Notes: generated by a model from the letters alone, not told the origin. Numbered from the stretch's first letter, positions 29,328-54,800 are shown. The stretch is 64,000 bases of DNA from Penicillus capitatus (GCA_965649825.1 OZ287719.1:62001-126000), one strand, 5' to 3'. A program made the numbers and translations.

Positions 29328-29361
29328 GTTGTGAGAATTCGCTCGAAAGGGTAAAGGAATG

Positions 29362-29608
29362 TGTCGCCGGTCGGCCGAGCAGAAAACAATACACAGCGGA
29401 AGACTCTTACATTAATCGGAGCAAGGTCTTGAGTGTTCAGAATGTGTCCTTATGTATGCGCGCGGTGACGCGACGTTCCTAGGCAGGTGAATCATCGTGC
29501 TGTCAAAACCACAGAAAAGGGCCCTTTGTCCCGTAGGACAAGACAGGCAGCGTTCCTTGGCACGGATAACCCCCGCAGAACAAGACAGTGTCACATCGCT
29601 CGGCGACA
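29362..29608 (-). mobile_element. Solo LTR (247 bp) related to the family 3 LTR
   Basis: Termini TGTCGCCG..CGGCGACA. Aligns by eye with 53272..53507 (CAGCGGAAG, GGCAGGTGAATCA, GTCACATCGCTCGGCGACA). Flanks GAATG/CTCGT are not a TSD. Confidence 0.8.
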
Positions 29609-30322: not shown

Positions 30323-30398
30323 GCCCTCGTGGTGTAATGGTTGGCGCACTTGAAGTTTTCTCAAGAGGCGTGCGTGGGTTCGAATCCCGCCGAGGCGC
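30323..30398 (+). pseudogene. tRNA-derived element (tRNA pseudogene or SINE head)
   Basis: A-box TGGTGTAATGG, B-box GGTTCGAATCCC, anticodon arm CTTGA-AGTTTTC-TCAAG. It lacks U33, the acceptor stem is imperfect, and there is a 4-nt duplication in the variable loop. Confidence 0.7.
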
Positions 30399-31099
30399 CC
30401 CGTGAGTCACTCGGGTGATAGTGACTGGCCGGAGGGTGAAGCGGCGACTCATCATGATCAAGAAAATCAGAAGATTGTGCAATTAAAAAGACGCGGGTCA
30501 AGTCCAGACCGGAGCATGCGGTTATACGTGAGGTGGACGACGAATCGTCGCAGACGCTGTGAGACATGTGAAGCGACGGATGGAAGCACGAGTCTTCTAA
30601 TTGAACGATTGAACGATGAATTGACAATGGGCGTCGGGTTGCTGATATGCTAATTAAGCGCATGCAACTGTAAAAATCCAAATCGAATCGAATCGTGCGA
30701 AAGCCATGGTGAGCCGAACTAACGCGCGTAGCGGAGACGAAACAAAACGGCAACACGCAAAGAATTGATAAAATTACAGTTCGGCCGTTTCCCCGGAAGC
30801 TCTCGCCGATCACTCATAACGATGAACAAAAGCACAAGGCGCGTCTGAGCCTCTTATTTCTTCGGTGTACCTTGACTCGTCTGGCGCAGAACGTCCCTCG
30901 TCTTCCGTCCTCGCGTTGCACGCAGGTCGCCTCGGAGTCTTCTCACGTCTCCTCGAGAGTCCATCCATCCCGTCCACTGCAGCCATCTGGTTCACGCGAA
31001 AAAAAGAAAAAAAGGCAAAAAGATAGAGAAAGATGAAGGTGAGTGGATGCAGCAACCGACGCAGTCTTTTGCGCCGGCAGCTTTAGGGCTAGGGTGACT

Positions 31100-31161
31100 G
31101 CTCAGTCAAGGTGACCGAACAGTTTCGACGGCGCCACCCGTCTCATCAGACCCCTTAAGAG
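31100..31161 (-). ncRNA. Type I hammerhead ribozyme (predicted cleavage GUC^A between 31113 and 31112)
   Basis: Minus strand: AAGGGGT-CTGATGA-GACGG(gtggcg)CCGTC-GAAA-CT(gttc)GGTC^ACCTT. Full core present; stems I, II and III can form. Confidence 0.75.
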
Positions 31162-31254
31162 TATTTGCCGATTTAGCGCTATCCAGTCCCGCCACGAGGA
31201 GGCACGGCTCGACGATGCGTTGGCAAACACACCGCCGTTGGGACCACAATTTTG

Positions 31255-31803
31255 GGTAATCACGAAATGAAACGAAATGAAATGCCATTCCTTGGGGTGG
31301 TAATCACGAAATGAAATGCCATTCCTTGGGGTGGTAATCACGAAATGAAATGCCATTCCTTGGGGTGGTAATCACGAAATGAAATGCCATTCCTTGGGGT
31401 GGTAATCACGAAATGAAATGCCATTCCTTGGGGTGGTAATCACGAAATGAAATGCCATTCCTTGGGGGGGTAATCACGAAATGAAATGCCATTCCTTGGG
31501 GGGGTAATCACGAAATGAAATGCCATTCCTTGGGGGGGTAATCACGAAATGAAATGCCATTCCTTGGTGGGGTAATCACGAAATGAAATGCCATTCCTTG
31601 GTGGGGTAATCACGAAATGAAATGCCATTCCTTGGTGGGGTAATCACGAAATGAAATGCCATTCCTTGGTGGGGTAATCACGAAATGAAATGCCATTCCT
31701 TGGTGGGGTAATCACGAAATGAAATGCCATTCCTTGGGGTGGTAATCACGAAATGAAATGCCATTTGGTGGGGTAATCACGAAAGTGCCTTGGGGTAATC
31801 ACG
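31255..31803. repeat. 34-bp minisatellite (13 full-length units plus degenerate flanking units)
   Basis: Unit TAATCACGAAATGAAATGCCATTCCTTGGGGTGG with an exact 34-bp period from 31301 to 31743. No spacers. Confidence 0.95.
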
Positions 31804-32370
31804 AGGATGTCCTTCCTTCCGGGATTCCTCAACCAGGTCGAAGGGACGGCCGCCTACAAGAGACGACCCTCACCCCGCCTTCGGGACTAACGGGTGGGCC
31901 CGACGCCGTAGAAGCCGCTCAACAGTCCGCGCCACAACCGTCGCACGATTGCCGCCATCGACGGCAGCGTCTCATGCGCTGTTGTATCATTCTTTCGACG
32001 GACAACCGAACGACGATTCGACGTAGTGGGACCGGAGCTGCGCAACTGTGGGGGAGTATCTCCCGGAAAGAAGGGCCATCCGAGGATGTCCCCCCGATCC
32101 GAGATTCCTCAACCAGGTCGAAGCAAAGGCCGCCTACAAGAGACGACCCTCACCCCGCCTTCGGGACTAACGGGTGGGCCCGACGCCGCAGAAGCCGCTC
32201 AACGGCCCCCGCCACAACCGCCGCACGATTGCCGCCGTTCTCGGCAGCGTCTCATGCGCTGTGGTAAGGTACTTCAATAGTGCAAAACTTCAATATGACG
32301 GAACAATCGAGGACGCGTTCGACGCATCCGGACTGGAGCTGCGCAACTACGGGGGAGTATCTCCCGGAAA
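31803..32370. repeat. Two diverged ~280-bp direct repeats
   Basis: Copies start at 31803 and 32082 (GAGGATGTCC...CAAGAGACGACCCTCACCCCGCCTTCGGGACTAACGGGTGGGCCCGACGCC...GGGGAGTATCTCCCGGAAAG). Confidence 0.9.
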
Positions 32371-34889: not shown

Positions 34890-37404
34890 TCGACTTGACA
34901 GTGAAACAGTCACGGCGTCAAAGATACCCGGATACCTTCCGATACCTTCTGATACCTTTATCCAATTCATGCCCGTCACGAACCCTTGCAACCATTCGAC
35001 TCACGGACACAACGTCTCTTCCGTTGCCGCCGGCAAACAAAACGTTCGGAACTTTGTCTCGAATGGGCGCTTTCCAGTCTCGTCGGCATCCCAAAACAAA
35101 CGGCACAAACCAGTCCCTTGGCGATCTGACCGTCCGTCCACACTTCCGTTCCCGCATTCCCTAGACCAATTCCCAGCGCCTCCGCACTAGACCTACCGCC
35201 GGATGCAAACCCCGTGGAGCGACATACCATACCGTCTAGTCTGCCACTCTCCCTTGTGGACACCAACGTCTTCCTCAAGCTGACGACGAAGCAAAGCTCC
35301 GTAGCGAAACCGACGCAAGAGATTCACGGACCACGGCTCTTGAGAAAAGAATCCACGCAGAACACCCGAAGCGTGCTTGCAGTGGAACGGCAATACAGGA
35401 AAGAAAAAACAACAAGCCTACGACACACACCGATAGCGGAAAGACGGCGCTGGCGCGGGAAAGAAAAAACCACGTTTCCTACGAAGACACACAAGAAAAG
35501 AAAAAACGCGCGTCGAGCCATGGCGATCGCAGAACTCAAGGTCAGCACGCCGCAGTCAACCGAGGAACGTGGCCCACGGCAATCCGCGTTCCCAAGCCGT
35601 CATCACCCCACGCTCTCCACTAATCGCACACCTAGGTCGTCGTGCTTTGGCCTCACCGCGTAGTCGCCATCCATATTCTCCCCTTTATCACTCATCCGAG
35701 TTACGCATCAGATCGCCAACTCATCCTCTTTTGCCGACCCTTGACATCTCTTCTCTCCTCGCCCGCCCATCTCGACAAAGCTCCGCCTTCCACGCGAGAA
35801 GCCCGATACAACCTCTAACGAATCCTAATCCGCATACCGGACCGCTGCATCGGTCACCTATCTTCTGGATCTCTTTCCAGAATCCCTAGATGACCCCTCC
35901 GCCTCACCGACGCCCTTCCGCTTTGCATCGGCCGCTTTCTTTATGTCTGACATCCGCTGTTCACGAGCCCGTGTGCTCCGTAACCCGTAGCGTCGCTTTG
36001 CCTCTCTTTCCCTTGATACCTCTTCATCGTAAGATGATTCCCAAGAACGACGTTTGGAACCGCGGCCCCTAGATACCGGCTCTTCCACTTCCATAACCGT
36101 GTCCCCGTCGTCGTCCACGTTCCCTTCTTCTCCGTCGACGACTGTCGGTATTCCTTGCACCACGTTCACAGGCGTCCCCTCGGCGCCCTCCTCGACGTCC
36201 GCCGGCGTCCCGTCGGCGGTTGACGCCATCGGTATGCCTTGCACGACGATCACGGGTGTCCCGTCGGCGATCTCCACGACGTCCGCCGGCGTCCCGTCGA
36301 CGACTGTCGGTATGCCTTGCACGACGATCACGGGTGTCCCGTCGGCGATCTCCACGACGTCCGCCGGTGTCCCGTCGACGATTGACACCACCGGTATGCC
36401 TTGCACGACGATCACGGGTGTCCCGTCGGCGATCTCCACGACGTCCGCCGGCGTCCCGTCGACGACTGTCGGTATTCCTTGCACCACGTTCACAGGCGTC
36501 CCATCGGCGATCTCCACGACGTCCGCCGGCGTCCCGTCGACGACTGTCGGTATTCCTTGCACCACGTTCACAGGCGTCCCATCGGCGATCTCCACGACGT
36601 CCGCCGGCGCCTCGCTGGTGACCGGCACAGCCAGGCTTATCAAGAAGCTCACGAAATTATGGGCCAAGTCCACGAAGTCCTCTGATGCACGGCGTTCGTC
36701 GGGCGCTGTGCTCATGAGGAAATCAACTGTTGAACTCAAGTATTCCACGAAACGCAGCGTTCTTAGGAATTCGTAGTCGTCGTTGGCGTCGGCGACCAAG
36801 TAGTTCGACACCGCAGCTTGCCATAAAAGGTTAGCATAGTCCGCCCAGGTGCGAAGTTGCACATCACTAGGGCCAGGTTCGTCCGCTCCTCCTGCTACAC
36901 GTCGCGGAGCCAGTTGCCGGCTGACGTGAAGGACCGCCAGAAATCTATCTGGGTCTGTCCCTTCATACGGTGTGTCGCCAAGATCTGGCTTGGCGATGTG
37001 ACTGCCCAGAGGGTCACATCGCTTAAAACGGAGAAAAACCCTGGGTCTGTGAACCTTTGTAAGCCTTTTGCGTTCTGCGTTACGTGCGTGTGTAAGCGAA
37101 ATCCATCCTGGATAACGACGAAGCGCAACCGCCTTCGCGTGCAGTTGTTCCTTACCCTCCTTTGTACCAAAACACGCCATATCTGTCGGCGCTAGCGTTC
37201 TTCAGACAAGCGGAACGTGGGAGCTCTGACGTGACCGAGTCCATAGCGCAGGACGGTACCCAAGTCGACGATCGACTGGTCCATCCTGTGGAGGCAGGAC
37301 CAACCGACGCAGAAGCCGACGAAGAAGCACCACGAAGGGAATTATCCCAAGAGCGACAAGTGGTTTCGGAGCGAGGCTACGGCGAAGTAGAAGGGGTAGA
37401 CAAG

Positions 37405-39222
37405 ATGCAGCAAAAAGCCTGGCTGTGTCTCTTTGCGTTGTTTTACCTTCTTGTCTCTGCGGCAATAATCGCGGGACACGCGGAGAATTCAACAGAGAAG
37501 GAAAGGTCGGAGAAGGAGCTCCAAGATGAGTTTAAGGAATCAGGGGCAACATTGGCTGACTTGTTACAAAGGATCAAAGCCTTAGAAAAGGAAGCGGCCG
37601 AGTTCAGGGCAGAAGCTCGGAGGGAGAGGGCCGCACGGATACAGCTGAATGAGGAGGTGCAAATACTTAGGAAGGAAAATGAGCGCCTTCGAGATCGGAT
37701 GGAAGCGGAGATTATTAACGAGGTGCTTGAGGAGGGGCAAAAATTACGTTTGGAGGCCACGAGGACATGGTGGGAGTGGCTGACGGGGACGGCTCCCCCG
37801 GGCGTGGAGGTGGAGAGAACGACCACGATCGAGGGTTGCCAAGATTTGAAGTGTTGCTTTGGAATGTGGTGGACGACCGTGGGAGAACTATTCCATCAAA
37901 CAACGGATCTTATTTATCGATTCGTGTGGGATCCATATGGCACTGGAGGCCACTGGGCATCGGGTCTGTTTAGCGCCGGCTTCTGGGGACCGGTGCTCGG
38001 AATAACGATCCTAGTGGTGGTGGTGAATCTCCTACTGCTGGCTGTCTTCCGAGCGGCTGATATATGGAAGGGAATGAAGGGGCTGGCCAGTAGGTTGGGA
38101 GGGCTGCCCATGTTTAAGCTCGTGGGTATGGCCTTCTCGAAGCTGCGAAGGGGAGAGGGGCCAGAGGGGACCTCCCCTGAACTCCAGGAGATGCGAAGGA
38201 CCGTAGAAAAGCTTCAGAAGACCGTGGAGACGAGTCAGCGGAAGGGAAAGGAGCAACGGGAGATGAGGGAGCTCCGTGGGCAGGTGGAGAACCTCATGGC
38301 CAAGTGCGAGCAACAGGCGCCTCCAGGAGAGGATGTGCAGACGAAGACCGTGAGAGAGATGCAGGCATTTTTCCAGCAGCAACTCGATCAGCTACGAAGG
38401 GAGTTCATACATACGGGGAAGCAACCAGGACCTGCACCGATCCCGGTGGATATGTCTCCCCGTCGGAGGCAGAATCCTGGTTCAATGCCACCAGGGGGGA
38501 GGCAACGCTACTGTGAGCGCTGCAAGAAATGGCATCCGGGACTTGAGTGCTGGGATTGCACCAAGTGCAGAACGTGTGGTGCAACAGGAATGTGCGAACA
38601 CCGGGCAAAGATCGTGGAGAACAACCGAAGACGATCCCCTACTCCCAGGCCGGAGAGGACGAGAGCTGTGGCGGTATGTGAGCGGGAGGAGTCTGAAGCG
38701 ATGTGGGATTGGGACGCGAGGTTAGTGGAGGAGGCATCGCAAACGGGATCTTCAATCTCCTTCTCGACGAAAGGGGAGGGAAGTGGAGAACCGGGCACAC
38801 AAGAGTCGGTCGTTGCGGTGGTGGACAAAGAGGCTAAGGGATACCGTCTGCGAGGACACTTGGCTGTGGGAGGAGGGGTAGCTCCTTGCACGTTCCTTAT
38901 CGACACTGGCTCGGAAGTGAATTTGCTGAGTGAGAAGACGTGCACGCGCCTAGGAGTGGGTATTCAGTCGGCAGGACCTGACAAGCCAAACTTGGCAGGG
39001 GTGTCCGGAGAGCGGTTAGAGGTGACGGGGCAGGCGATCTTAGAGACTCGGTTTGGTCAAGAGGAGGGGAAGGCGATTCGTTATTGGGTCGCGAAGAACG
39101 TAAGAGACATAATTGGGATTCCTGGAATAGGGCAGCTGGGGATTTCATTGACGAACCCGGGTCACATGGCAGTGTTTCCCTCGGGGCAGAAACTTTTTTG
39201 TCAGGTGGTGCAAAAAAACTAA
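37405..39222 (+). CDS. Family 2 Gag-protease: signal peptide, coiled-coil ectodomain, TM, coiled coil, Zn fingers, aspartyl protease
   Basis: MQQKAWLCLFALFYLLVSAAIIAGHA; TM FWGPVLGITILVVVVNLLLLAVF; CERCKKWHPGLEC; FLIDTGSEVNLL; IIGIPGI. Confidence 0.88.
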   Translation: MQQKAWLCLFALFYLLVSAAIIAGHAENSTEKERSEKELQDEFKESGATLADLLQRIKALEKEAAEFRAEARRERAARIQLNEEVQILRKENERLRDRMEAEIINEVLEEGQKLRLEATRTWWEWLTGTAPPGVEVERTTTIEGCQDLKCCFGMWWTTVGELFHQTTDLIYRFVWDPYGTGGHWASGLFSAGFWGPVLGITILVVVVNLLLLAVFRAADIWKGMKGLASRLGGLPMFKLVGMAFSKLRRGEGPEGTSPELQEMRRTVEKLQKTVETSQRKGKEQREMRELRGQVENLMAKCEQQAPPGEDVQTKTVREMQAFFQQQLDQLRREFIHTGKQPGPAPIPVDMSPRRRQNPGSMPPGGRQRYCERCKKWHPGLECWDCTKCRTCGATGMCEHRAKIVENNRRRSPTPRPERTRAVAVCEREESEAMWDWDARLVEEASQTGSSISFSTKGEGSGEPGTQESVVAVVDKEAKGYRLRGHLAVGGGVAPCTFLIDTGSEVNLLSEKTCTRLGVGIQSAGPDKPNLAGVSGERLEVTGQAILETRFGQEEGKAIRYWVAKNVRDIIGIPGIGQLGISLTNPGHMAVFPSGQKLFCQVVQKN

Positions 39223-39248
39223 AGGGCTCTCCCGCGCAGACGGGAGAG
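39213..39248 (+). promoter_or_regulatory. -1 programmed ribosomal frameshift signal
   Basis: A_AAA_AAC heptamer (39213..39219) directly before TAA, 7-nt spacer, 8-bp stem CTCTCCCG/CGGGAGAG with a 6-nt loop. Confidence 0.88.
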
Positions 39249-42194
39249 GGGGGTGGTACTTTGAAAAGGGATAAAAGAAAACAAAAAGAGGGGGAAATCA
39301 GCACGCTCTGTTGTAAGAGCGTTTCATTAAAGCAACTGTGGGTATATGAGCCGAAGTGGCGCATTTTATGCAGGGGGAACGTGCTGCAACTGCCATTGGG
39401 CAAGACCACATACATCCCACCCAGGGAATCAATGCGGGTTTGTTTGCCCTGGGAGGTCAGGGGCGCAGATTTGACCGGTTTTTTCTCTCTACTGCATCGT
39501 AAGGAGGTATCGGTATCAAGCCAGTTTAGCGCAAAGTCGGGACGGATCCATGTGTTGTTGCTTAATTTCGGATCGGAGGTGGCTGTCATAGCCGCCAAAA
39601 CGTTTGTCCTGGGTGTGGGGTCGCAAGGGTCGTTCTTTCATGTGTGCACGGCCGATGGGCGAGAACATCAGTTGTCTAATGGTATGGGGGTTGAGTGTGG
39701 GGCGAAGGGATGGGCGGTTGCGAGCGTTAGCTCGGAGCCAAAATTTTTTGCCCAGTTCCCTCAGTTGTTTTGTGAAGATACGTGTCGGATTCCGGAGCAC
39801 ATGCAAAGGTTTCGGGTCCGGAAGGACGACATTTCTTGGGTGGGGGACATGATCTATCGGGGGAAGTGTGCGGTCAATGTGGAAAATCTGGTCCCGGCGC
39901 GGGCCATAGATGAGACGGTTGAATCGATGCTGCGTGATGGCTATGTGGAGGAGGTGGGGGACAGTTCGTCGCTCATGTTGCATCCGTTGATCTTCCTCCC
40001 GAAGCCAGACGGGCGTACGCGCTTAGTCATCGATTTACGACGTATCAATGGTCATACACGACACACGAGGGGGGGACTACCAGCGATACATACTGTGTTT
40101 CGCCAAGTGCCGACCACATGGCGTTTTTTTTGTAAAATTGATATTAAGAATGGTTACCATAGGGTACCAGTGGAACGTTCATTGGGGGATTTATTTGCAT
40201 TTGGTATACGCCGCCGTTTCTTTCGATACAAGGTATTGCCTCAGGGATGGGCGGCTAGTCCGCATATTTTCCATGCTGTCATGATGGAAATATGCTCTGG
40301 CCATGAGGCAATACATTATATTGATGACATAATACTGGGGGCGTCGACCCTAAAGGAATTGACTGCGCGGGTTTCTGCTCTGTTAGCCACCCTACAGAAA
40401 TACGGATTGCAGATACAGCAGAAGAAGTTTCTTTTTGGAAAGGAATCTGTAGAGTTCTTGGGTTTTGAGCTCCGGAGTGGGGGGCGTGTGAGTGCTGAAA
40501 GCTATTTACAGAAGCGAAGGGAGGCACTGGAAGGTCGAATAGAAACAAAAAGAGACCTGCAGAGTCTGCTGGGGACATTGAACGTCGCTCGGCACTTCGT
40601 ACCAGGGCTCAGCCAAAAGACGGCTGGGTTGCAGAAGTTGTTGCTGGCTATGGCGAGCAGTAGCTTGGGGACGGAAGAAAAGGAGCAGGCTCACGAGTTG
40701 GCGAAGAAGGCCTGGGGGGAGGTGTTGGAATCCTGTGTAACAGTGCAGATGGCGATGCCAGAGAAGGCCAGATTTGAGTTGTACACGGATTGGTCAACGG
40801 AGGCGATGGGATACGTCCTTTTTGCTGAAGGGGAGGACGGGCGTCATATCACAGACATCAACTCCACAAGGGCAGTCGAGCGGACAGCCGTGAGCAGCTT
40901 CCTGGGGGAGCTGCGGGGAATTGTGTGGGCACTGAAGAAGACGCGACATATCGTCTGGACCTCGGCAATCAAGGTCTGCTGTGACAATCAAGGCACAGTA
41001 GCTCGCTTGCAGAAGGGGGATGTCATGGGGGATGATGTTCGATGTTCTCGACTCATGGGATGGCTGTGGGGAAACTTCCCCCAAGTACAGTTTGAGTATG
41101 TACCTGGCGCAATCAACCAAGTGGCAGATTACCTGAGTCGGAGAAAAGGCCAGCAGAAGGAGGGGAAGGTGGTAGGAGCAGTTATGCTTCAGCAGCGGCC
41201 TCTCGTTGACGTGGTAAGGAGCCGTCTGGAAAAGGCACATCAGGGTCACTGGCACGCAGAAAGGACGTGGCAACATCTGAAACGGGATGGCCCGGTTTGG
41301 CCGGGAGCAAGGAAGGAGGTGTTCCAGTATGTGGAGCAGTGCCCCAATTGCCAACATTTTCGTGGCTTAGAGCACCGGGAACCATGGACGGGGATGGAGA
41401 TAACTCACCCAAACGATGTTGTTTTCGGAGATTTTCTGGGGCCTATTACTTTGAGTCGGGGGCGAGGAAAACGAGTCCTTCTGGTGTTGGTCGACGGTTT
41501 CAGTCGCATCACGCACTTACACGTGGCTAAGACTCCCACGGAAAGAACGGTCCTGCGAGGATTGAAGCGATGGGAACAAGCTTTATCATGGAAACATGGA
41601 CATATTCGTATGTTCATGGCAGATAGAGGAGCGGCATTCATCGGCGGAGGGGTTCGAGCATTCTGTGAGGAGCATGGGATCAAGCAACGGTGGTCGCCAA
41701 GTCATGCACCTTGGTGCAATGGTGCAGCAGAGCGACAGGTGGGAAACGTGAAGACAAGATTGGCCAAGATACTCTGGAAGTCTGCCGAGGACATCTCTAT
41801 CCATACGTTGGAGGAGATTTTGAACCAAGGGATTTGCGAGACCACGGGTTTCACACCCATGGAATTGTGCTGGGGAAGACGACGTGACGGCAGCTTGATG
41901 ACGGACATGGAGTGGGAGCAGGCCATGCACCTCGCTCAACAGAAAAGAGCGGCTGGGCGACAGAGGGACAGGGAAGCATACCTTCGAAAATTTTCGAGCA
42001 AGCCGCCGCTACAGACAGGACAATGGGTTCTGGCGTATGAACCTCATAGAAAGCGCCATGCACTCCATTCGCCGTGGACAGGTCCTCACCTAACTGCGGA
42101 GCCGCGGGGGTCGAGATTATGGATGGTGTGGAAAAATGGAAGTTCTCGAAGAGTGGGACCATTTCATGCAGAACATTTGCGGTTATATTGCTAG
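39213..42194 (+). CDS. Family 2 Pol (-1 frame): dUTPase-like, RT, RNase H, integrase
   Basis: RLVIDLRRIN, LPQGW, HYIDD; LYTDWS..NQVADYLSR; HQGH..CPNC, DFLGP, DRGAAF, ERQVG; C-terminal GPF/Y-like module. No chromodomain. Confidence 0.93.
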   Translation, partial: KKLKGSPAQTGEGGGTLKRDKRKQKEGEISTLCCKSVSLKQLWVYEPKWRILCRGNVLQLPLGKTTYIPPRESMRVCLPWEVRGADLTGFFSLLHRKEVSVSSQFSAKSGRIHVLLLNFGSEVAVIAAKTFVLGVGSQGSFFHVCTADGREHQLSNGMGVECGAKGWAVASVSSEPKFFAQFPQLFCEDTCRIPEHMQRFRVRKDDISWVGDMIYRGKCAVNVENLVPARAIDETVESMLRDGYVEEVGDSSSLMLHPLIFLPKPDGRTRLVIDLRRINGHTRHTRGGLPAIHTVFRQVPTTWRFFCKIDIKNGYHRVPVERSLGDLFAFGIRRRFFRYKVLPQGWAASPHIFHAVMMEICSGHEAIHYIDDIILGASTLKELTARVSALLATLQKYGLQIQQKKFLFGKESVEFLGFELRSGGRVSAESYLQKRREALEGRIETKRDLQSLLGTLNVARHFVPGLSQKTAGLQKLLLAMASSSLGTEEKEQAHELAKKAWGEVLESCVTVQMAMPEKARFELYTDWSTEAMGYVLFAEGEDGRHITDINSTRAVERTAVSSFLGELRGIVWALKKTRHIVWTSAIKVCCDNQGTVARLQKGDVMGDDVRCSRLMGWLWGNFPQVQFEYVPGAINQVADYLSRRKGQQKEGKVVGAVMLQQRPLVDVVRSRLEKAHQGHWHAERTWQHLKRDGPVWPGARKEVFQYVEQCPNCQHFRGLEHREPWTGMEITHPNDVVFGDFLGPITLSRGRGKRVLLVLVDGFSRITHLHVAKTPTERTVLRGLKRWEQALSWKHGHIRMFMADRGAAFIGGGVRAFCEEHGIKQRWSPSHAPWCNGAAERQVGNVKTRLAKILWKSAEDISIHTLEEILNQGICETTGFTPMELCWGRRRDGSLMTDMEWEQAMHLAQQKRAAGRQRDREAYLRKFSSKPPLQTGQWVLAYEPHRKRHALHSPWTGPHLTAEPRGSRLWMVWKNGSSRRVGPFHAEHLRLYC

Positions 42195-42889
42195 GGTGAT
42201 CGTCAGAGTTGGCGGGAAGCGTGGTGTCGCCAAGATCTGGCTTGGCGATGTGACTGCCCAGAGGGTCACATCGCTTAAAACGGAGAAAAACCCTGGGTCT
42301 GTGAACCTTTGTAAGCCTTTTGCGTTCTGCGTTACGTGCGTGTGTAAGCGAAATCCATCCTGGATAACGACGAAGCGCAACCGCCTTCGCGTGCAGTTGT
42401 TCCTTACCCTCCTTTGTACCAAAACACGCCATATCTGTCGGCGCTAGCGTTCTTCAGACAAGCGGAACGTGGGAGCTCTGACGTGACCGAGTCCATAGCG
42501 CAGGACGGTACCCAAGTCGACGATCGACTGGTCCATCCTGTGGAGGCAGGACCAACCGACGCAGAAGCCGACGAAGAAGCACCACGAAGGGAATTATCCC
42601 AAGAGCGACACGGTGATCCTATGTCCTCCTCGCCGGGCACGTATGCAGTAAACGTGTCAAAAAGAGCCGACTGAAGGGCGTTGAAGAACACGCGGTACCC
42701 CTCACGTTCGACCAGTTGGTTGTCCAACGCTTGCAGAACGCTATGAATAAGCGACGACACGGACGAACTCATCGTTGTTTTTTTTGCAGAAAAATCCGAG
42801 AACCAAACGCCAATATGGCTGAGGGCAGTTTCGGCAAAAAGACGCGAAACGGCAAACGGCAAATACGCGGAATAATTGTACGGCGGTAC

Positions 42890-43713: not shown

Positions 43714-46531
43714 TCATCGGTCCCGCGCTCGAGAAGCGACAACTTGATGCTTTTGATCTCCAAGGCAGCGACGCGGCGAAGATGAACGGTCCTTCCGGAT
43801 GCAGGAGGATATGTATGACGACTCTATGCGGATGCCGCAGATCGGGATCACCGTCCGACAGCAAGCAAAGCTGTTACATCGACAGCAAAGACGAACATCG
43901 AACGGTCTGACACAGAGAGAAAGACAGGTAGCTAGCTTCGTGTGATAGACAAAAAAGCAAAACAGTTTCAAGAGAGAAACACTGGTACGACATGACGGTA
44001 AAAAAACAGGTAAGTGGTGGGCGATCTGTCTCTGAACCTCCAGATCTGGTCCATTCCGAAAGATGACGTGTGTTTGGTGAATCGGAACCGGTCTTTGCAC
44101 TGGGCTCCATGTCCTCTTCATCGAGACGCGTTCTCTTCTTTTTCGCGCCGGCGTCGACGAGAATCTAAACGCAAGAGCCGTATGTGATCGAGTACAGACA
44201 GCGAGCGCATGATGTCACCTCGGCAAGGATCGGGTTGCCATGACTGGCTGCAGCGGAGATCGGCGTGCGCGATTCCTCGTCCTTTGAATCAACGTCGGCC
44301 CCGGCATCGACGAGCTCCTACGATGGACACGCCCGTCTCGATCGTTTTATGCGTGTGCTCTCTCGCCAGCGTGATTTCGGCATGTCCATAGAGTGCCGCT
44401 TGATGAAGCGCGGTCCTCTTTGCCAGAGTTATCGCCTCGACGTCGGCATCGACCGTCAGGAAATACTGCAACCGCTCGTCACCGCAGGCGCGTTGTCACT
44501 TGATGCAATGACGCACTTGGACCATACGCAGATTCCCCTTCGACACGGCATCGTAGAGCGGCGTCCTTCCGACAGTATCACCGCCGTTGGTATTCGCTCC
44601 GCCTTTGTACAAAACCTGCAACGATGTGCTTGCGCCGCCATTCTTTGCTTTGAGACGAGGAGGCACCTATGCGGTTTCGACGTCCCCATCGAGCGCCGCC
44701 ACATGAAGCGACGTCTGATCGCGCCGGTCGGCCCTCAAAGACACATAGATGCCAAACCACATCGCTTTACCGCTGAAGACGGACGTACATCTCGATTTCG
44801 TCAAGCCACGGTTTCAGGATCTTGGCGAATGTCGCAGGAGAAACGATGGTCCTGTCTGTGTGAGACTCCAGCCGTCTGCTCTATGTGAGGAAGTTTGCGA
44901 TTCGTCGCATCGTCGGCGGAGAACGTGGTCGAAAGCGGCGCGATCGAATCATCCCCCAACTCGCATTTTGTTGCATACTTCAAGCATCTGTGTTCCTTCG
45001 GCTAAAAGCCGTAGAATCTCATCTTCCCCCTTTACCCAGCTAGTGACAAAAGAATCGGGATCCATGCGTTCCATCGAGACCTTATGCAAAACAGTCTCGG
45101 CATTGTCTTTCGGTAGGACATCATTGCCGAAAAGGAAAAAACAGCGCAAAAAACGCCTCGGCTAGCACAGGAGAACGGTGCCCGACATTAAAAGAAGTGT
45201 CCGTCGGGCTTCATCCGAGACACGATCTCGTCGGGAATAGTGCAGAACAGACCCACAATGCATAGGCAATCGTACGCAACCCTCCCATCGACGTCTTCCG
45301 CAGTGGTGGATGCTCCTTTGTCTAGCAGCATCTGTAGAGCATCGAGCGAGTTCTGCGCAGTGGACAAACAGAGTGACGCACCTCAATGATCTCTGGTATT
45401 CCGATTGCTGCGGCAACATGAAGAGGTCTCATTCCGCTAGGCATCTCTGTTTTTTCGACGTCGGAGCCAGCTTCAAGCAGAGCCTGCACAAACAGATTCT
45501 TGTCTGAGAAGACCTCCGACACATGAGATGGATGTACTTTTACTACTTCGACGTTCACAGTGCATATTGTGGCAATGAGTACTGTCATTCCAATATCATC
45601 ATTAACTGCGTCGATATCTGCGCCTTTATTGATTAGATACTACACAAGAATCCCACTAAGACAGAGCGTTCATGTGGCTCGAGACGCACTTTCATGACTT
45701 CAGCAAATTCACCCTGCTTGGAGGGTTCTAGGTGGTCCGAAATTACCATCTGCGCCGCTAAGAGAAGTGCATTATTTCCTTTGGTGTCAACTGCTTTGAC
45801 ATCTGCGCCTTTACTGATTAGATACTACAGAAGAGTCTCACGACGACAGAACGTGCATGTGGCTCGAGACGTACTTTCACCATTTCCGTATTTCTTGTAG
45901 CAGACGCATAGTGAAGCGGAGTACGATGAAAGAAATCGGTTGCTTCGATGTTTGCTCCTCTGTCGATTAGATACTACAGAAGAATCCCGTGACTATGAAA
46001 CGTCTGTACAGTCCGTGACACACTTTCGCGACCTCTGTTCTTCTCGCAAACAGCGCCCAATGGAATGCATTCCATCCACCGCGGTCGATCTCCTCGATGT
46101 CTGCTCCGTCGTCCAGCAGAGCCTGTTTACGAGTGGTCCTTCTCTGAGAACCTTGTTACGCTGAAAAGACACACCTCCACTTCTTTCACGTCTCCATCCA
46201 TCGCCGCCTGGTGAAGAGGAGGCGTTTCCTGATTGTCATGTACGTGGAGCTTTGCGCTGCGCTCGAGCGGCAACTACGTTGTCAGTCTCAGCTGGCGCAC
46301 ACAGCCTAGGGATCATGGTTGTACCTGATGAAGATCGTCCTTCTCTTGACCAGCGACGCGTGAGAGGATGTTTCCGCCGTCCACGCCCGCGAACAACTGT
46401 GCCCCTTTCAGACAACAGCAGATGCGTTTTGACGACGTCGCGTGATGCTAACCGGTGATACCACGGCTGCCGGATGCCACACGGGAAACGAGCAGAAGGC
46501 AGAGCCACACGTACAGCACACTGCACCTCAT
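43714..46531 (-). CDS. Signal-peptide + ankyrin-repeat protein, paralog A3; multi-exon, 3' end uncertain
   Basis: ATG 46531 MRCSVLYVWLCLLLVSRVASGSRGIT; ankyrin exons including SGMRPLHVAAAIG and TKRTALHQAALYGHAEIT. Confidence 0.62.
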
Positions 46532-49149
46532 GTTTACGCGACCTCGAAACGTCTATGCGGCGTAAAGGCAAAGCGTTTAGCACGGACTGGAATGCGAGGC
46601 TTGAAACAAGACACTGACAAAGACGCGTGGTCGAATTTGTAGGCTGCCTTGACGATCCTGCGAATGTACCGGACATCATCCGTGCGTCTCCTCCACGCAT
46701 TTTCGCGCAGCATGCCTCGGCATGACATAACCTCAAACGTCTTTCTCCACAGCACGGGATGAGGGATAGGGAACGTTGATTCTCTGGCGAGTCGCTCAGC
46801 CCGATGCTGCACGGTCCTTGCTCCGCAGAGCACGTAGTGTTTCGATTTCCGCCTGCGACATGGGCATCGTTTTCCAGGACGCCGAAGATCTTCACGTTTT
46901 CGAAATTGCTGCTGTCCACTATCTCAAGAGGAGACGGATCCTCCGTGGTCGCCCTGATTAACAAACCCTCGTTACTCGAATATACATCACATCAGATGGG
47001 TGTGGCGGCAGATGTACAATTGGAATGGCGAATCTGCTGTCCGTTGAGGACAGCTTCTCGTGTCACACAGTTCGTGTGCAACACTGCGTCGCTCTGAAGA
47101 CCGACAGCTTCATGGAGAATGATGCAGTTGCGATGTGTTAGGTGCCATGACCCTATGCAGCAACAGATGCAGTGTCGATGAAGCATCCATCCTTCATCGA
47201 CAGTTCCAACTGCTGTCCGTTAACAAGCCAAGTCTGACAGGCGAAGACGATACGGGTCATGAATGCATCGTCGCTGCTGTTCAAAGTTCTCTGCGTGCTC
47301 TAGTATCATCTTTCCTATCTGGGAACAAACGCGGCCATCAGACTGTTTGTTCCCTGTTATGCGATGGAGACAAGGAGTATCTCGGCCTGCTTTACCAATA
47401 CACGCTGCACCAGTAGCAGACAGACAGACAGACAGACCTTCTTTGTCGATCTCTTGTGCATCAAATGCCTCGAGAAGAGGCTCGTTTCCTGCAGCACCTG
47501 TCAAATCATGCCGTTCCGTGTTGGCGGTCTTCGGGAAGCTAAACGGTCCGACGAATCAGTTCATTAAGTGTCCATCGATCCAATCTCCTCTTCGTGTTCT
47601 TTGCGCGTCGACTTTGCATAGGGCATTCCATCGTGGAAATGCACTTCGCTGACCACCTATCCATCTGCATCGTTTCGCAATTCTTCTCAGAGGCGAAGGA
47701 GTTGTTCGAAACTCAAAAAGAGAAGCCATTCAACGGGTAGACACGACGAGAGGGAAGGCAGATCTCTCAATTCGTCCGCATTTGATGCCTGCCTTGTACA
47801 TAGCGAGAACCAGTCACTGAAAGAACACTGTGCAATTCATAGACGAACAAAGGATGCTAGGGAAACGTCCTGACTTCTGTATAAGGAGTCGCCCTTCGTA
47901 TTCTCCCATTCTGCTCAAACAAGGAATCCTTGAGGTCAAAGGCGACGGAAGAGACATGCTCTGCTGTTTCTTGATGACACGAGACAGATCCTTTCTCCTC
48001 TCTATGGAAGTATGTGGCGACAGTCATTTCACGGACTTGAGAATCGAAGATGTGACGGGGATGCAACAGTGGCAGTGCTCTAGTATTACATTAACCGTTT
48101 TAACATCTATTCAGCCGTCCTGTCCATGCAGTCTTTTCAGCGAATGCTGACTGTCCTATCGAGACGTCGTCTTCCATCGTCGACATCTCTCCACATTAGA
48201 CAGACTTTGCCCGCAAAGCGACCGCTGCCAAATCCAACACACCTGCAGGAAAATGTCACCATCGCGTCATTAGGCACAGAACACCACTCACCGTCGTGAC
48301 CAACACCGTCTTGCATTTTGCTAGGATGCCTGCACAGTATCCTTCGTTGTCCGTCAATGCACACAGGAGCACCGTGATGACAAGGATGAAGTGAAACGTC
48401 TTTTGGGCGTTCATGTCGACGACGCTGAGGCTGCCAGCGACAGGAAGGACGATAATGTATGGACTGGCGCTGTTCGCTATCACAGCACCGCGAGTGGAAT
48501 GTTTCGCCCGACGATTTGAACAGACTGCCGAAAAGTGTCGCCCAAACGCACAGGCAGCTGCGAAAACCGAATGAGATAATCGGCTGCTGCATGCGCCATG
48601 AAATACCCTCGCCGCCGCGATTGTCTATCTACGACGTTCGCGATGCGCAGCTGTCCCACGTGGCCGTCACATCAAGTCGCCTCCCGCAACTCGACGCATC
48701 CACGACTCCTCACTTTTCTTCGCCCTTGTCCTCTGCGTCGGCTACGATGATTGTCCTGCGTGCTGCCACGCGAGTTCGCACATATTTGGCTACACCCGTT
48801 TACAACGTGGCTGCGTGAGGGATCTTTGTTATCGCGTTACTGATCGACGACGCCACCAAGACGCGTCGAGATGCCGTTCGTGTCGACTGCTCGTCGCATA
48901 CGCGCGCACTAACTGGACCATTAGACGATCTGAACCAGGAATAGGCGGTCGTTCGTTAGACGGAGGCAGGACTTCACGCAGTCCGTCTCCTTGTTCTCTT
49001 CTCATGATGGAACAAGCGTGTATCCAACAGACAAACAAAAACAGAAAACCCATCCGCCAAGGCGTCCTATTTCAGGCGCCGGCTGCATTCAGGAGAGGAG
49101 GTACTCGAGTTCAGCCCTGGTCGTTTCAGAACAGGGCGGATCGGCGTCG

Positions 49150-51568
49150 ATACAGATGACATCGTAAGGCATCTTTCCATCCCGGTCCTTCACATCCGTG
49201 TCTGCGCCGGCGTTGGTGAGAATCTAAACGCAAAAGCCGTATGTGATCGGGTACAGACAGCGAGCGCATGATGTCACCTCGGCAAGGATCGGGTTGCCAT
49301 AACTGGATGCAGCGTAGATCGGCGTGCGCGATTCTTCGTCCTTTGCATCAACGTCGGCTCCGGCGTCGATGAGCTCCTACGATGGACACGCGCGTTTTCG
49401 ATCGTTTTGGGCGTACGCTCACTCGCCAGTGTGATTTCGGCGTGTCCATAGAGTGCCGCTTGATGAAGCGCTGTCCTTTTTGTCAAAGTTCTCGCCTCGA
49501 CGTCGGCATCGACCGACAGGAAATACTACAAACGCTCGTCACCACAGGCGCGTTTTCACTTGATGCAGTGACGCACTTGGACCACACGCAGATTCCCCTT
49601 CGCCACGGCATCGTAGAGCGGCGTCCTTCCGACAATATCGCCGGCGTTGACATTCGCTCCGCCTTTGTACAAAACCTACAACGACGTGCTTGCGCCGCCA
49701 TTCTTTGCCGGAGACAAGGAGGCACCTCCGCAGTTTCGACGTCATCATCGAGCGCCGCCACATGAAGCGACGTCTGATCGCGCCGGTCTGTCGCCTCAAC
49801 GTCGGCGCCGTTATCAATCAAAATCTATAGCGATACTCGCATGTCGCAGTCTGTCTGAGCGATTGAGGATTCACCTTTGCAGCGGTCTCATGTCCGTTGC
49901 TCGCTGCGACGTAGAGCGGTGTCCTTTCTTCGACGTCGGCCAAATCGACATACGCTCCCGCACCGATCAGCATCTACATCCATACCTCCTCGTTTTGTTT
50001 ACTGTCAAAACGAGGCTCTCGCTTTCCTGCACAATTTTCCAATGTCCGTTCTCTGATGCGCCATAAAGTGGCGTTCGGCCGAATACGTCAAACGCATTCA
50101 CGTCTGCTTTGGCATCTATCAGGAGCTGTAGCAAAACACGCATACGGCGATCGTTCGGTGTGATTGATCCGCAGCGCACCCTGACGACGTCGTGGTATCC
50201 GTCTGCCGCCGCATGGAAGAGCGCCGTCACTCCGTGGGTGCTTGCCGCGTTGACATCGGCGCCAACTCTGATCAACAACTACAACAGCATCCATCTGTCG
50301 TAAACTCCATAGCGCATCGATGGCGCGCCTCGAGAGCGTCCACGTGTCCATTGCTCGCTGCGCGATAAAGTGGCGTCCGTCTGAGGTCATCCGTGACGTC
50401 AATGGTGGCGCCGTGATCGAGCAGAGCCTAGAACAGCAATCACATTGCTCCCTTCTCACGCCTCTTCTGGCGAGGGACTCGGCACACTTTCATCACTTCA
50501 ACATGTCCGTTCGCCGCCGCATCTAAGAGTGGGACCGTTCCCTTCACGTCAGCCGTGTCGACAGAGGCCCCTCTGCCGATTCGGATTAGGACCTACGGTG
50601 AACGCGCATTCCGGCTCCGATGATCCGAACGACATATAAAGGCACCTTGACGACGTCGACGTGTCCATTGGCCGCTGCGAGATGCAATGGCGTCCTTCCG
50701 TTCTCTTCGACTACTCCGATATCTGCGCCGCCATCAATCAGCGCCTGCAACAGCAGATGTCTGACACTGGCGAACATCCGGCAGTCGTAGACGCACCTTC
50801 ACTTCGTCCACGTCTCCATTATAAGCTGCCCAGTGCAACAGAGTCCATTCCTCTCTGTACGCCGGCGTCCATTCCTCCAGATCGACGTCATTCGGTTCGA
50901 TGACAAAAAGGATCTGACGTGCCGTTCTTCCTTCGACGCATAACGGAGCGAAGCAAGACGCACCTGTTCATCTTTGCTGCCGGTATTGTGTATTGTGTGA
51001 AGGGACAGGTAGCCTTCGTTGCAGTCGAACGGGTCTGTACGTTCATTGCCGTCGGAGCCGTGGCATATCGATGAAGCGTACCGATACAGGCGTTTTCTGT
51101 AAGACGGTGTGTTATCTTGTGCTTGGCGAGCTGCCCCGTCGTCTTCGGCTTTCCGTAACCCTGTGTCGAAAACCGCGCCGTCATTTTGCATCGGAGATAC
51201 CCATGCCGTCACCTTCGTGCCGATCGTCGCGTCCGACGACGCGGGCCGCCGACTTCCTGCACACATTCGCCGTCTTACGACGTTGGGTGGCGTGAATGTC
51301 CACACCTGACAAAGATCTACCTACGAACTGTCGCAGGGTCCATCCTTACCTCCATGCTTTGCGAATTTCAGAGTAAGGCGCAACGTACTTTGGTTATGAG
51401 GTTCGCCGGGCGGTCGACTGGGTCGAGCAGCACGAGATCTAAACAACGGCACACGGCTGTGTGAAGGGAGGGAGGGATGTGGCGACTGGCGGCGGCACCG
51501 CGACTGCCCCATGTCGACTGCGGGAGAAGGCTGAGGCACATCAACAGGTACAGAACGGCGCGCTTCAT
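49150..51568 (-). CDS. Signal-peptide + ankyrin-repeat protein, paralog A4; multi-exon, 3' end uncertain
   Basis: ATG 51568 MKRAVLYLLMCLSLLPQSTWGSRGAAA; ankyrin exons GRTPLHLAAANGHVDVVK, GVTALFHAAADGYHDVV, GRTPLYGASENGHWKIV, QTSLHVAA. Confidence 0.62.
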
Positions 51569-51856: not shown

Positions 51857-54800
51857 TTATCGAAACAGTAGTACAGAAGCCTCTTCGCATAGTTGTGCGG
51901 ACGCCTCGCTCGTTGCGAGAAAGTAGGAGGAAGGATACTGCCGTTTGGCGTTAGCGATTCTGTGTGGAGGTATGTGCGATCGCATCCATTCTCTACAGAA
52001 TTGTAACGGCTGATCGTCAGGTCGGCCCCTCAAAGACACATAGATGCCAAACCACATCGCTTTAGTCGCTGAAGACTGAAGTGCATCTCGATTTCTTCGA
52101 GCCACGATTACTGGATCCCGGCGAATGTCGAAGGAGAAACGATGGTCCTGTCTGTGCGAGACTCCTGTCACAGTCTGTGTGAGGAAGTTCACGATTCGTC
52201 GCATCGTCGACGGAGAACGTGGTCGAAAGCGGCGCGATCGCATCATCCCCCAACTCGCATTTTGTTGCATACTTCAAGCATCTGTGTTCCTTCGGCTAAA
52301 AGCCGTAGAATCTCATCTTCCCCCTTTACCCAGCTAGTGACAAAAGAATCGGGATCCATGCGTTCCATCGAGACCTTATGCAAAACAGTCTCGGCATTGT
52401 CTTTCGGTAGGACATCATTGCCGAAAAGGAAAAAACAGCGCAAAAAACGCCTCGGCTAGCACAGGAGAACGGTGCCCGACATTAGAAGAAGTGTCCGTCG
52501 GGCTTCATCCGAGACACGATCTCGTCGGGAATAGTGCAGAACAGACCCACAATGCATAGGCAATCGTACGCAACCCTCCCATCGACGTCTTCTGCAGTCG
52601 TGGATGCTCCTTTGTCAAGCAGCATCTGTGGAGCATCGAGCGAGTTCTGCGCAGTGGACAAACAGAGTGACGCACCTCAATGATCTCTGGTATTCCGATT
52701 GCTGCGGCAACATGAAGAGGTCTCATTCCGCTAGGCATCTCTGTTTTTTCGACGTCGGAGCCAGCTTCAAGCAGAGCCTGCACAAACAGATTCTTGTCTG
52801 AGAAGACCTCCGACACATGAGATGGATGTACTTTTACTACTTCGACGTTCACAGTGCATATTGTGGCAATGAGTACTGTCATTCCAATATCATCATTAAC
52901 TGCGTCGATATCTGCGCCTTTATTGATTAGATACTACACAAGAATCCCACTAAGACAGAGCGTTCATGTGGCTCGAGACGCACTTTCATGACTTCAGCAA
53001 ATTCACCCTGCTTGGAGGGTTCTAGGTGGTCCGAAATTACCATCTGCGCCGCTAAGAGAAGTGCATTATTTCCTTTGGTGTCAACTGCTTTGACATCTGC
53101 GCCTTTACTGATTAGATACTACAGAAGAGTCTCACGACGACAGAACGTGCATGTGGCTCGAGACGTACTTTCACCATTTCCGCATTTCTTCTACCAGACG
53201 CATAGTGAAGCGGAGTACGATGAAAGAAATCGGTTGCTTCGATGTTTGCTCCTCTGTCGATTAGATACTACTGTCGCGCGGAGGCGCCGAACGAAACGAT
53301 AACAGCGGAAGTCTTTACAGGTAAATCAGAGCAAGGCGTTCAGAGGTTCAGATTGCGCATCAAATACCTGCGCGATGACGCGACTTGACGAGGCAGGTGA
53401 ATCACCCTAGCCTCAGAGCCAGAGAAAATGGCCTCGGGTGATTGATCCAGCACCGCCCAGGACGTGGACCCATCAGAAACTAGGCAGGGTCACATCGCTC
53501 GGCGACACCACGCTTCCCGCCAACTCCGAAAAACAAGTAAAGCAAACCCCCACGAAAACAACAGAATGAAATCAGTCTATGCCCGAGGTGAATCGTCGCA
53601 GCGCCGAGAAAATGGTCCATCCCGAAGATGATGATGCTTCTGTGTTTGGTTCCCCCGCTCTCTGCTGCGCATCCGATATCGTCGGATCCACTGACTCGAC
53701 CGCATTAATCCGCGCTTGCGGACAGTCCTTTGCCAGATGCCCCTTGCATCGGCACACATAACATATCCGACCGCGCTTGATGGCACCTCCGCCATCATCT
53801 GCCGCATCGGTTGCTCTCGCCCGTCGTCGGCGCGGGAACCGCCCAATGTCGTGCAAAACGCGCTTCATCTGATGCAACGTCTTCACGGTTCTCCGTCCTT
53901 CTGCCGGTCTTGTCGTCATCAACTCAGCCGTCCTTTCGCCGTTCGTCCGTACGGTTTCCTGCAGAGTCTTCACCTCGGCGGTCAAAGACTGTAGACATGG
54001 CACCAAATCAGGTGCCGAAATAAACTTTTTCTTCGCCTCTGTAAAGGCGGCATCAGTCTCTCTAAGCTTCTCATGGAGAGAGGAGGCTTCCACGCGTGCC
54101 TCGTTTGCATCTTGCTGTGCCTTGACGCTGCCTTGCTGCGCCTCGGCAAGATCCTGTTGCAGCCTCGCATTCGCCCCTGACAACCGTTCGTTTTTCACAT
54201 TCACTTCTTCCCACGCTTGCGCAGCCAAGGCGTTTTGCTGCAGCCCCTGCTCAAACTCCCGGTACAGCTCGTCGTGGAGATCTTTCCACCGTTCGCTCTC
54301 CTTGACCGCGTTAGCACATGCCGTCTGCGCTTCAGACGCGCTTCGCTGTTCGCGCCGTAGCTGCTGTTGTAGCTGCTCCCTCTCCTCGCGCAGTCGTCTC
54401 GTCGTCGCTTGCAACTCGCGCCTCTCTTGCAGCCTCGGGCAAACGTACTTGACAAAATCGTGCAGCTCTGTTGTGTCGAGCAAATATTTGTCATCGATCA
54501 CCGCGACGTAGCAACCCCGATGTGTCGCTCGCACCCTCTGAACGGCAATTCTATCCGGATACAGACTTTCATCTTCATTGAACCAGCGCAGCAGGCTCGG
54601 CTCCCAATTGGTGACGTCGTAGGACCCCTCCCCTAAGAAGTGACCTTGCTCCGTTCTTCTTTCTCTTCGCCCTTGACTCATCCTTGCTCCTGACTTCTTG
54701 AATTTCCTAGATATGTCTAGAAAATGTCTAGACAGGACTCGACTTCCCCGAAGTAAGCGCTTCAGTGCACACAGCACGCGCGCAACGTCACCGAGACGGA

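Follow-up and report, generated by a model that had tools for sequence, protein, structure and literature searches.

What starts plus-strand DNA synthesis in a long terminal repeat (LTR) retrotransposon whose 3' LTR is preceded, where the polypurine tract (PPT) should be, by a sequence resembling half a tRNA? The question is raised by a 64,000-nucleotide (nt) stretch of Penicillus capitatus DNA (OZ287719.1:62001-126000; hereafter the window, with positions counted from its first letter). It carries three families of LTR elements, here called families 1, 2 and 3, in which the sequence next to the 3' LTR reads as the 5' half of the initiator methionine tRNA (tRNA-iMet), in the sense of the tRNA. 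The original prediction for this locus was that the segment has replaced the PPT and that a tRNA fragment primes the plus strand there. The feature is real, conserved and unusual, and it defines a small clade of green-algal Ty3/gypsy elements. Sequence comparison gives good support to a tRNA-derived segment at the place of the PPT, and tRNA-primed plus-strand synthesis stands as an open hypothesis.

A tRNA-like segment at the 3' LTR edge

The family 2 element contains the following features:

36968-36972, plus strand: target-site duplication CGGTG, left copy, repeated at 42611-42615
36973-37358, plus strand: 5' LTR, 386 nt, TG..CA, 100% identity with 42225-42610
37361-37376, plus strand: minus-strand primer-binding site (PBS) TGGTTTCGGAGCGAGG, 2 nt past the 5' LTR, complement of the tRNA 3' end ...CCUCGCUCCGAAACCA
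37405-39222, plus strand: gag-protease reading frame, from the list of open reading frames (ORFs), with a sub-threshold Asp_protease_2 match
39084-42194, plus strand: pol frame with reverse transcriptase (RT), RNase H and integrase (Pfam RVT_1, RT_RNaseH, Integrase_H2C2, rve)
42203-42224, plus strand: tRNA-iMet 5'-half-like segment TCAGAGTTGGCGGGAAGCGTGG, sense, abutting the 3' LTR; tRNA positions 2-7, 8-12 and 18-27
42225-42610, plus strand: 3' LTR, identical to the 5' LTR
42611-42615, plus strand: target-site duplication CGGTG, right copy, equal to the left copy

The order of the domains is that of Ty3/gypsy elements, with a weak Asp_protease_2 match in the upstream ORF (E 8.6e-4, under the Pfam cut-off) followed by the four pol domains. 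The segment runs directly into TG, the first bases of the 3' LTR, and since the pol stop codon lies 8 nt ahead of it, the segment is non-coding.

Family 3 has the same arrangement on the other strand:

54838-55073, minus strand: 5' LTR, 236 nt; the LTR pair differs by one mismatch, with the duplication GTAGT at 55078-55074 and 53271-53267
54826-54837, minus strand: PBS TGGTTTCGGAGC, immediately past the 5' LTR
53572-54777, minus strand: gag-like ORF with a CCHC zinc knuckle (CX2CX4HX4C visible in the translation), without pol
53508-53530, minus strand: tRNA-like segment TTCGGAGTTGGCGGGAAGCGTGG, its first 7 nt equal to the acceptor strand predicted from the PBS
53272-53507, minus strand: 3' LTR, adjoining the tRNA-like segment

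This family is a 1.8-kb non-autonomous relative of family 2, nested inside another repeat, and a Pfam scan of its gag-like ORF gave no match. The sites first described in families 2 and 3 were confirmed in sequence and position, and both belong to bona fide LTR elements with target duplications.

Family 1, which represents a deeper Ty3/gypsy lineage (28% RT identity with family 2), is present in two copies, at 21032-31183 and 52047-64000, both on the minus strand:

29308-29326, minus strand: PBS TGGTTTCGGAGCGAGGTTT, copy A; 5' LTR reduced to its last 35 nt (29361-29327)
23244-23267, minus strand: tRNA-like segment TTCGGCGAAAGATAGGTGGGCCCA, copy A; acceptor start plus tRNA positions 16-35, exact over 26-35
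23086-23243, minus strand: 3' LTR, 158 nt, copy A; start verified on the intact relative L131
56070-56093, minus strand: tRNA-like segment of copy B, a duplicate of A; 3' LTR at 56069-55912, PBS at 62151-62133

The PBS is the same as in families 2 and 3, lengthened to 19 nt, and TTCGGCGAAAGATAGGTGGGCCCA is followed by TGTTCTG at the 3' LTR edge.

Conservation of the segment and identity of the tRNA

Very few homologues of the family 2 pol protein were found among 5.8 billion proteins searched, the close ones in two ENA long-read assemblies. The relatives include a further copy of family 2 (L001), four further families with 58-71% pol identity (L002, L003, L004 and L130) and a distant lineage, L005, with 33% pol identity to family 2. 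A search of IMG/VR with a pol profile gave no more relatives. In the loci with both LTRs on the contig (L001-L005 and L126), the LTR pairs are identical, a target duplication is present and the PBS TGGTTTCGGAGC was found in all. Direct TG..CA repeats with a short duplication, as in Metaviridae (Ty3/gypsy), are present in families 2 and 3, L001-L005, L126 and L131; the duplications measure 4 bp in the family-1 group and 5 bp in the family-2 group. The sequences before the 3' LTR in the more distant relatives were as follows:

L005: TTTCGGAGTTCTGCGCAGGCGGATGGGTGGGCCCA, followed by TGTTG
L131 (ERZ25074695): same as family 1; 97% identical to it, confirming the LTR start and a 4-bp duplication
L126 (ERZ25074695): cTTCGGAGattagacagaagataGGTGGGCCCA, followed by TGTTGTG; 67% identical to family 1
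L127 (Logan SRR33785046, 40% guanine plus cytosine, GC): acatcagacgaaagataGGTGGGCCCA, followed by TGTTCTG; acceptor block gone
L128 (Logan SRR23287135, 31% GC): CCGGAGTccaataaGCAGTGGAAGCGTG, followed by TGAAG; presumed LTR start, where the contig ends

In the family-2 group the 22-mer before the 3' LTR, TCGGAGTTGGCGGGAAGCGTGG, is 100% identical in six families (the gag-only family 3 counted), while the upstream 40 nt are 27% identical, which is the random level, and the first 40 nt of the LTR are 41% identical. The conserved island thus spans from tRNA position 1-2 to the LTR edge. The segment ends at a verified LTR start in two window elements and in seven complete loci (L001-L005, L126 and L131), and L130 shows the same junction on a contig from which the 5' LTR is absent. 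Conservation across copies and families exceeds purine content, as the acceptor block TCGGAG persists and so does CCCA, rich in pyrimidines, next to the LTR. No other purine tract lies upstream of the segment, in the window copy or in its relatives, and the segment itself lacks the expected purine run; the claim that a conventional tract has been replaced is supported. The comparison with ordinary PPTs is based on the literature, since the element intended as an outgroup control (L129) had no clean LTR pair.

The lineages retain different blocks of the tRNA, which jointly cover positions 1-36. In L005 the acceptor strand is followed by GCGCAG, from the D stem and loop, and by an anticodon stem-loop that reaches CCCA; the LTR itself opens with U36. 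L128 carries a 14-nt exact D-arm run (tRNA 13-26) in an AT-rich element, just upstream of the presumed LTR start. Both L005 and the family-1 lineages extend through the anticodon stem to ...GGTGGGCCCA, followed by TG at the LTR edge; by parsimony this common form is the ancestral one, from which the family-2 group would have lost TGGGCCCA. The LTR edge falls between tRNA positions 27 and 28 in the family-2 group, and between 35 and 36 in L005 and the family-1 group. The segment is non-coding in the family-2 group and in L005, unlike in the family-1 group, where the pol frame enters it: the stop codon is the TAG in GATAGG in L126 and L127, and a TGA at LTR bases 6-8 in family 1 itself (23236-23646).

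The PBS points to the tRNA concerned. It reads TGGTTTCGGAGCGAGG(TTT), lies 0-2 nt past the 5' LTR, ends in TGG (the complement of CCA) and has a T-arm part as in the iMet gene L029. Real green-lineage tRNA-Met(CAT) genes, called by ARAGORN on contigs of JGI metagenomes, begin ATCAGAGTGGCGCAGCGGAAGCGTGGTGGGCCCATAACCCAC..., matching the start of the plant initiator tRNA that the original prediction had given. Some of them (L029, L053 and L066) have the T arm CCGAGGATCGAAACCTCG, which is exactly that implied by the 16-20-nt PBS, A59/A60 included; A60 is a hallmark of initiator tRNAs. The earlier view that the PBS is directed at the 3' end of the same tRNA class is supported.

The PBS further implies an acceptor 3' strand CUCCGAA and hence a 5' strand UUCGGAG, two base pairs off the plant ATCAGAG, and the PBS acceptor is the same in all lineages (four samples). 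The predicted acceptor 7-mer precedes the D-arm-like part in family 3, L003, L005, L126 and L130, and matches at 6/7 positions in the other families of the family-2 group. The acceptor block thus fits the PBS-implied host acceptor, not the generic plant one, which is suggestive of a site that tracks the host tRNA. The three-block match first proposed for family 2 stands in its blocks, its one extra T and its 4-nt D-loop deletion, but the reading of TCAGAG as a plant acceptor does not: the G>A change at 42205 is private to the window copy, all other copies and families have TCGGAG, and it is one of 24 differences between this copy and L001.

For the statistical comparison, the 5' half of the host tRNA was predicted by taking the acceptor from the PBS and the remainder from plant-type iMet, and alignment scores were set against 20,000 random host 37-mers (mean 5.7, standard deviation 1.5). 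The family-2 group scored 16.5-17.5 (z 7.4-8), L005 20.5 (z 10) and family 1 13 (z 5), so that the sense copy of the iMet 5' half before the 3' LTR held up with z of 5-10 and with iMet as the best match among tRNAs. With the acceptor left out, iMet in sense was the best of 264 distinct tRNAs, outscoring 195 others and its own antisense, and the antisense scores of iMet at the site were 4-9 against 12-16 in sense. In each element the two best tRNA matches are the PBS, in antisense, and this site, in sense. A gapped score of about 15.5 also arose once by chance, in the integrase coding motif WSNGAAERQVGN, a purine-rich stretch at about position 4821 of the L002 element and about 4861 of L004, which is a warning for gapped tRNA-similarity searches in general. 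The significance therefore leans on a position fixed in advance, on exact runs that reach the LTR edge and on tRNA blocks that differ between lineages. Measured against real green-lineage iMet genes, the exact runs abutting verified LTR edges are of 10 nt (positions 18-27) and 10-11 nt (26-35/36), and a calculation by hand puts the probability that a 10-mer ending at the LTR edge matches some 10-mer of a 35-nt sequence at about 2.5e-5 per lineage. A PBS shows at least 8 nt of contiguous complementarity up to the LTR edge, and such a stretch is present here for the plus strand.

In the expected host iMet, the predicted acceptor is UUCGGAG/CUCCGAA, with GGCGCAGYGGAAGCGUGG as the D arm and GGUGGGCCCAU as the anticodon arm. 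Search patterns derived from the PBS for a host tRNA with this acceptor (GGATCGAAACCTCGCTCCGAAA and a shorter form) were unmatched in JGI metagenomes, GTDB genomes and IMG/VR, and no tRNA-Met gene was found in the window or in the scanned loci L001-L005 and L126-L128. An Rfam scan of the L005 site gave no tRNA match, as expected for only half a tRNA. The eIF2B-delta gene of the window has its best match in a EukProt protein (56%), then in Ostreobium quekettii (38%) and then in chlorophytes, and the EukProt relatives of the elements belong to Caulerpa lentillifera; the host is thus probably a siphonous green alga in or near Bryopsidales, for which plant-type D and anticodon arms are expected.

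Priming of the plus strand

In the established replication scheme, the plus-strand start is fixed by the sequence immediately before the 3' LTR (PMC5371799, PMC3185511). Because the segment occupies this position and no other purine tract is present, it would be the plus-strand initiation site, equivalent to a PPT. The reading that we favour, tentatively and with a probability of roughly 45%, is that this site goes back to positions 1-36, copied in sense, of the tRNA-iMet whose 3' end primes the minus strand, and that the primer is now supplied in cis by the element's own RNA. The position of the segment, its tRNA homology, sense orientation, conservation and exact LTR borders were observed directly; we infer the template-switch origin and the supply of the primer in cis. 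The original prediction had argued that a sense copy could not have been reverse-transcribed, an argument that fails, since a template switch onto packaged tRNA during minus-strand synthesis would give just such a copy. In this scenario the RT, while making minus-strand DNA across the border of U3 (the 3'-unique part of the LTR), would have jumped onto packaged tRNA-iMet, or onto a 5' fragment of it, and continued copying up to the 5' end of that molecule, after which the purine-rich D-arm and anticodon-stem part (GGCGCAGCGGAAGCGUGGUGGG) could have become the primer. At present, the element RNA at the site would resist RNase H digestion, be cut precisely at the LTR edge and prime plus-strand DNA in the manner of a PPT, with the RT/RNase H of the element recognising this particular sequence.

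Several observations favour supply in cis. Compared with real iMet genes, the family-2 22-mer carries one inserted nt and lacks four others, so that a canonical tRNA would find no perfect partner in it, and the indels fall inside the putative primer (GAGUUGGCGGGAAGCG and GAGUUGGCGGGAAGCGUGG in the element, GAGUGGCGCAGCGGAAGCG and GAGUGGCGCAGCGGAAGCGUGG in the tRNA). The existence of two LTR-edge positions on the tRNA also counts for it, as does the middle of the segment in the family-1 group, which has drifted from the tRNA and yet is purine-rich (GAAAGATAGG vs GGAAGCGTGG). Every LTR element studied takes its plus-strand primer from its own RNA (PMC5371799, PMC3185511), and PPTs lack a common consensus, those of Ty1 and Ty3 being short runs of alternating purines (PMC3185511). 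The segment shares with the PPTs of retroviruses and LTR retrotransposons (e.g. GAGAGAGAGGAAGA in Ty3) its place 5' of the 3' LTR, its role at U3 and the plus-strand start, and its G-richness, with 10-11 purines in the last 15 nt. The Ty1 PPT is itself a short G-rich run that includes T.

Other observations weigh against this reading. A canonical PPT consists of about 8-15 nearly pure purines up to the U3 border, which is not what is seen here: the segment is tRNA-derived, 4-5 of its last 15 nt are pyrimidines, and its last six nt read GCGTGG in the family-2 group; those of L005 and the family-1 group read GGCCCA, the ancestral type thus having CCCA at the cleavage site. The only exceptions cited in a review of PPTs have a single pyrimidine (PMC3185511). 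The conserved island is also 22-35 nt long and begins at tRNA position 1-2, and its TCGGAG, located 17-22 nt from the junction in non-coding sequence, does not vary, something that a PPT role would not obviously need. GGTGGGCCCA is identical to tRNA 26-35 across lineages whose RT is just 27% identical, a constancy that looks like the PBS-type conservation against an invariant host molecule and not like that of a lineage-specific PPT. Finally, under capture followed by supply in cis, the agreement within 1-2 nt between the start of the LTR and the end of the tRNA similarity would be a coincidence.

The alternative is the mechanism first proposed, which we regard as possible but less probable than supply in cis. 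A 5' fragment of iMet would anneal to minus-strand DNA after RNase H has cleared the genomic RNA and prime the plus strand at the LTR, its 3'-OH at A35 or G27 starting synthesis at the first LTR base, so that the site would act as a second PBS on the other strand. Such a fragment might occur free; alternatively, it might be the 5' half, left unpaired, of the tRNA that is still joined to the 5' terminus of the minus strand. Wherever the LTR edge of a lineage is verified, the 10-11 nt next to it match the tRNA exactly (GGAAGCGTGG or GGTGGGCCCA), and the match holds at 27-33% pol identity, as for PBSs. The CCCA end of the ancestral type is unlike any known PPT, the tRNA similarity stops where the LTR starts, and the acceptor block, equal to the host-specific acceptor predicted from the PBS, is kept far from the junction in non-coding sequence. 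Moreover, the minus-strand layout, with LTR...ACA followed by TGGGCCCACC..., resembles the half-tRNA PBS of copia and Ty5, in which 5' fragments of iMet with usable 3' ends act as primers (PMC5371799). As in those elements, the match runs from the 5' part of the initiator tRNA to the anticodon region and its complement abuts the LTR edge (PMC5371799); theirs primes the minus strand at the 5' LTR, whereas here a normal 3'-end PBS coexists with a half-tRNA match at the 3' LTR. In its sequence, the site resembles the copia/Ty5 half-tRNA PBS mirrored onto the other strand, with an implied fragment end at 27 or 35 in place of about 39-40.

Against priming in trans stand, first, the extra T and the 4-nt D-loop deletion of the otherwise invariant family-2 22-mer, and second, the two LTR-edge positions, which a single fixed tRNA fragment would be unable to serve. 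G27 lies inside the anticodon stem and is not a usual cleavage site. The middle of the site drifts while staying purine-rich, the acceptor block is missing in L127, a family-1 relative, and nuclease-made tRNA halves usually end in a cyclic phosphate and not in a 3'-OH. G26 and G9 of eukaryotic iMet are usually modified and pair poorly, and plus-strand priming by a tRNA in trans has no known precedent in any retroelement. Unorthodox primers do have precedents: in Tf1 the element's own RNA mimics the minus-strand primer and no tRNA is needed, and hepadnaviruses move a short RNA to the plus-strand start, one that derives from the viral pregenome and not from a host tRNA. It is possible, and about as probable as priming in trans itself, that one initiator tRNA gives both primers in a clade without a PPT mechanism, its 3' end at the PBS and its 5' half, released or cut near the anticodon, at the plus-strand PBS; the family-2 group may then have reverted secondarily to priming in cis.

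A role for the segment other than priming is considerably less likely. As an RNA-level mimic of the tRNA, it might serve in recruitment of the primer, in packaging or in strand transfer, pairing with the 3' half of iMet through the acceptor and anticodon stems or through self-complementary blocks (UGGGCCCA, GCGC), loosely akin to the 3' part of the Ty3 bipartite PBS or to the contact between U3 and the tRNA in HIV-1. The best-kept blocks away from the junction are the acceptor strand and positions 26-31, which pair with the 3' half in the cloverleaf, and TGGGCCCA is palindromic, so that over this stretch a copy in sense is equally a complement of the tRNA. Ty3 does employ a 3'-terminal tRNA-binding segment (PMC5371799). 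However, the acceptor 3' strand of the tRNA is already occupied by the 16-20-nt PBS, the family-2 group lacks TGGGCCCA entirely and has nevertheless been recently active (identical LTRs), and a search within the elements for a conserved complementary partner of at least 8 nt found none, which also speaks against a long-range partner. The antisense alignment scores at the site are low, and mimicry would leave the end of the segment at the exact LTR edge unexplained. The bipartite PBS of Ty3, itself a Ty3/gypsy element, and the extended boxes of Ty1 share with the present elements the use of tRNA-iMet and, towards the 3' end of the genome, a further sequence related to the tRNA (PMC5371799); those segments bind the tRNA by complementarity to its T and D arms, whereas the segment here is in tRNA sense with low antisense scores, and so is not a 3' PBS of the Ty3 type. 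No further conserved antisense tRNA matches were found in the LTR or 3' region of the elements.

That an ordinary G-rich PPT resembles the iMet 5' half by chance is highly improbable: the D arm and anticodon stem of iMet are purine-rich, the match first noticed was post hoc and gapped, and a gapped score of 15.5 recurs in WSNGAAERQVGN, but at one position, fixed in advance, three different tRNA windows are matched by exact runs of 10, 11 and 14 nt (those of 10 and 11 nt abutting verified LTR edges, the edge after the 14-nt run of L128 being only presumed), TTCGGAG(T), GCGCAG and CCCAT occur as collinear non-purine blocks, and iMet in sense beats all other tRNAs.

Two further ideas were rejected. 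An extended antisense tRNA 3' half in the 5' leader, which would have split the whole tRNA between the two ends of the element, was not significant past the 16-20-nt PBS (p 0.03 to 0.99), and a second, internal copy that might have served as a central origin for the plus strand, located in L002 and L004 at about 490 nt upstream, proved to be the chance match in integrase.

Surroundings of the elements and meaning for the clade

The two family-1 copies lie in a block of at least 9 kb that is 98.7% identical between 21032-31183 and 52047-64000 and holds the element with its flank, which looks more like a segmental duplication than two insertions; in both copies the 5' LTR is cut down to its last 35 nt, and copy B bears the nested family-3 insertion (53272-55073). 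The family-1 interior has 41-47% GC, compared with about 52% in the surroundings. Beyond the truncated 5' end of copy A, a 34-nt unit is repeated in tandem about 20 times (31170-31883, core identity 92-100%). A 2-kb repeat is present three times with 90-97% identity (21032-23086, 44752-46815 and 52047-55912), and two of its copies flank a family-1 3' LTR. The repeat pair 44145-44738 and 49204-49799 was considered as a further LTR element and rejected, as it is not one. Just upstream of the family-2 insertion, three tandem units of 162 nt (36132-36617; 91% and 65% identity) lie inside a 440-amino-acid minus-strand ORF without a Pfam match. The host genes of the window comprise an 82-nt tRNA-Leu (817-898), a homologue of IFT54/MIP-T3 (5564-6679) and eIF2B-delta (13412-14926), the last two as uninterrupted ORFs.

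In a full-text literature search, no account of a sequence in tRNA sense at the place of the PPT was found, which, given the incomplete coverage, is absence of evidence only; searches on the PBS string, on plus-strand primers that are tRNA-like or tRNA fragments, and on the sample accessions did not turn up the feature either. Priming from a genome-encoded purine tract is held to be universal for retroviruses and LTR retrotransposons, and a whole clade here has a sense copy of the primer tRNA's 5' half in that place, maintained by strong selection among lineages whose pol identity is only 27-33%. Annotation tools that require a purine tract have a blind spot for such elements. Even if the primer is the element's own RNA, the finding would mean that a host tRNA sequence can be captured as the origin of the second strand and that RNase H can cut precisely after CCCA. 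If a tRNA fragment does prime the plus strand, this would be a new replication mechanism and a new biological use for tRNA 5' halves.

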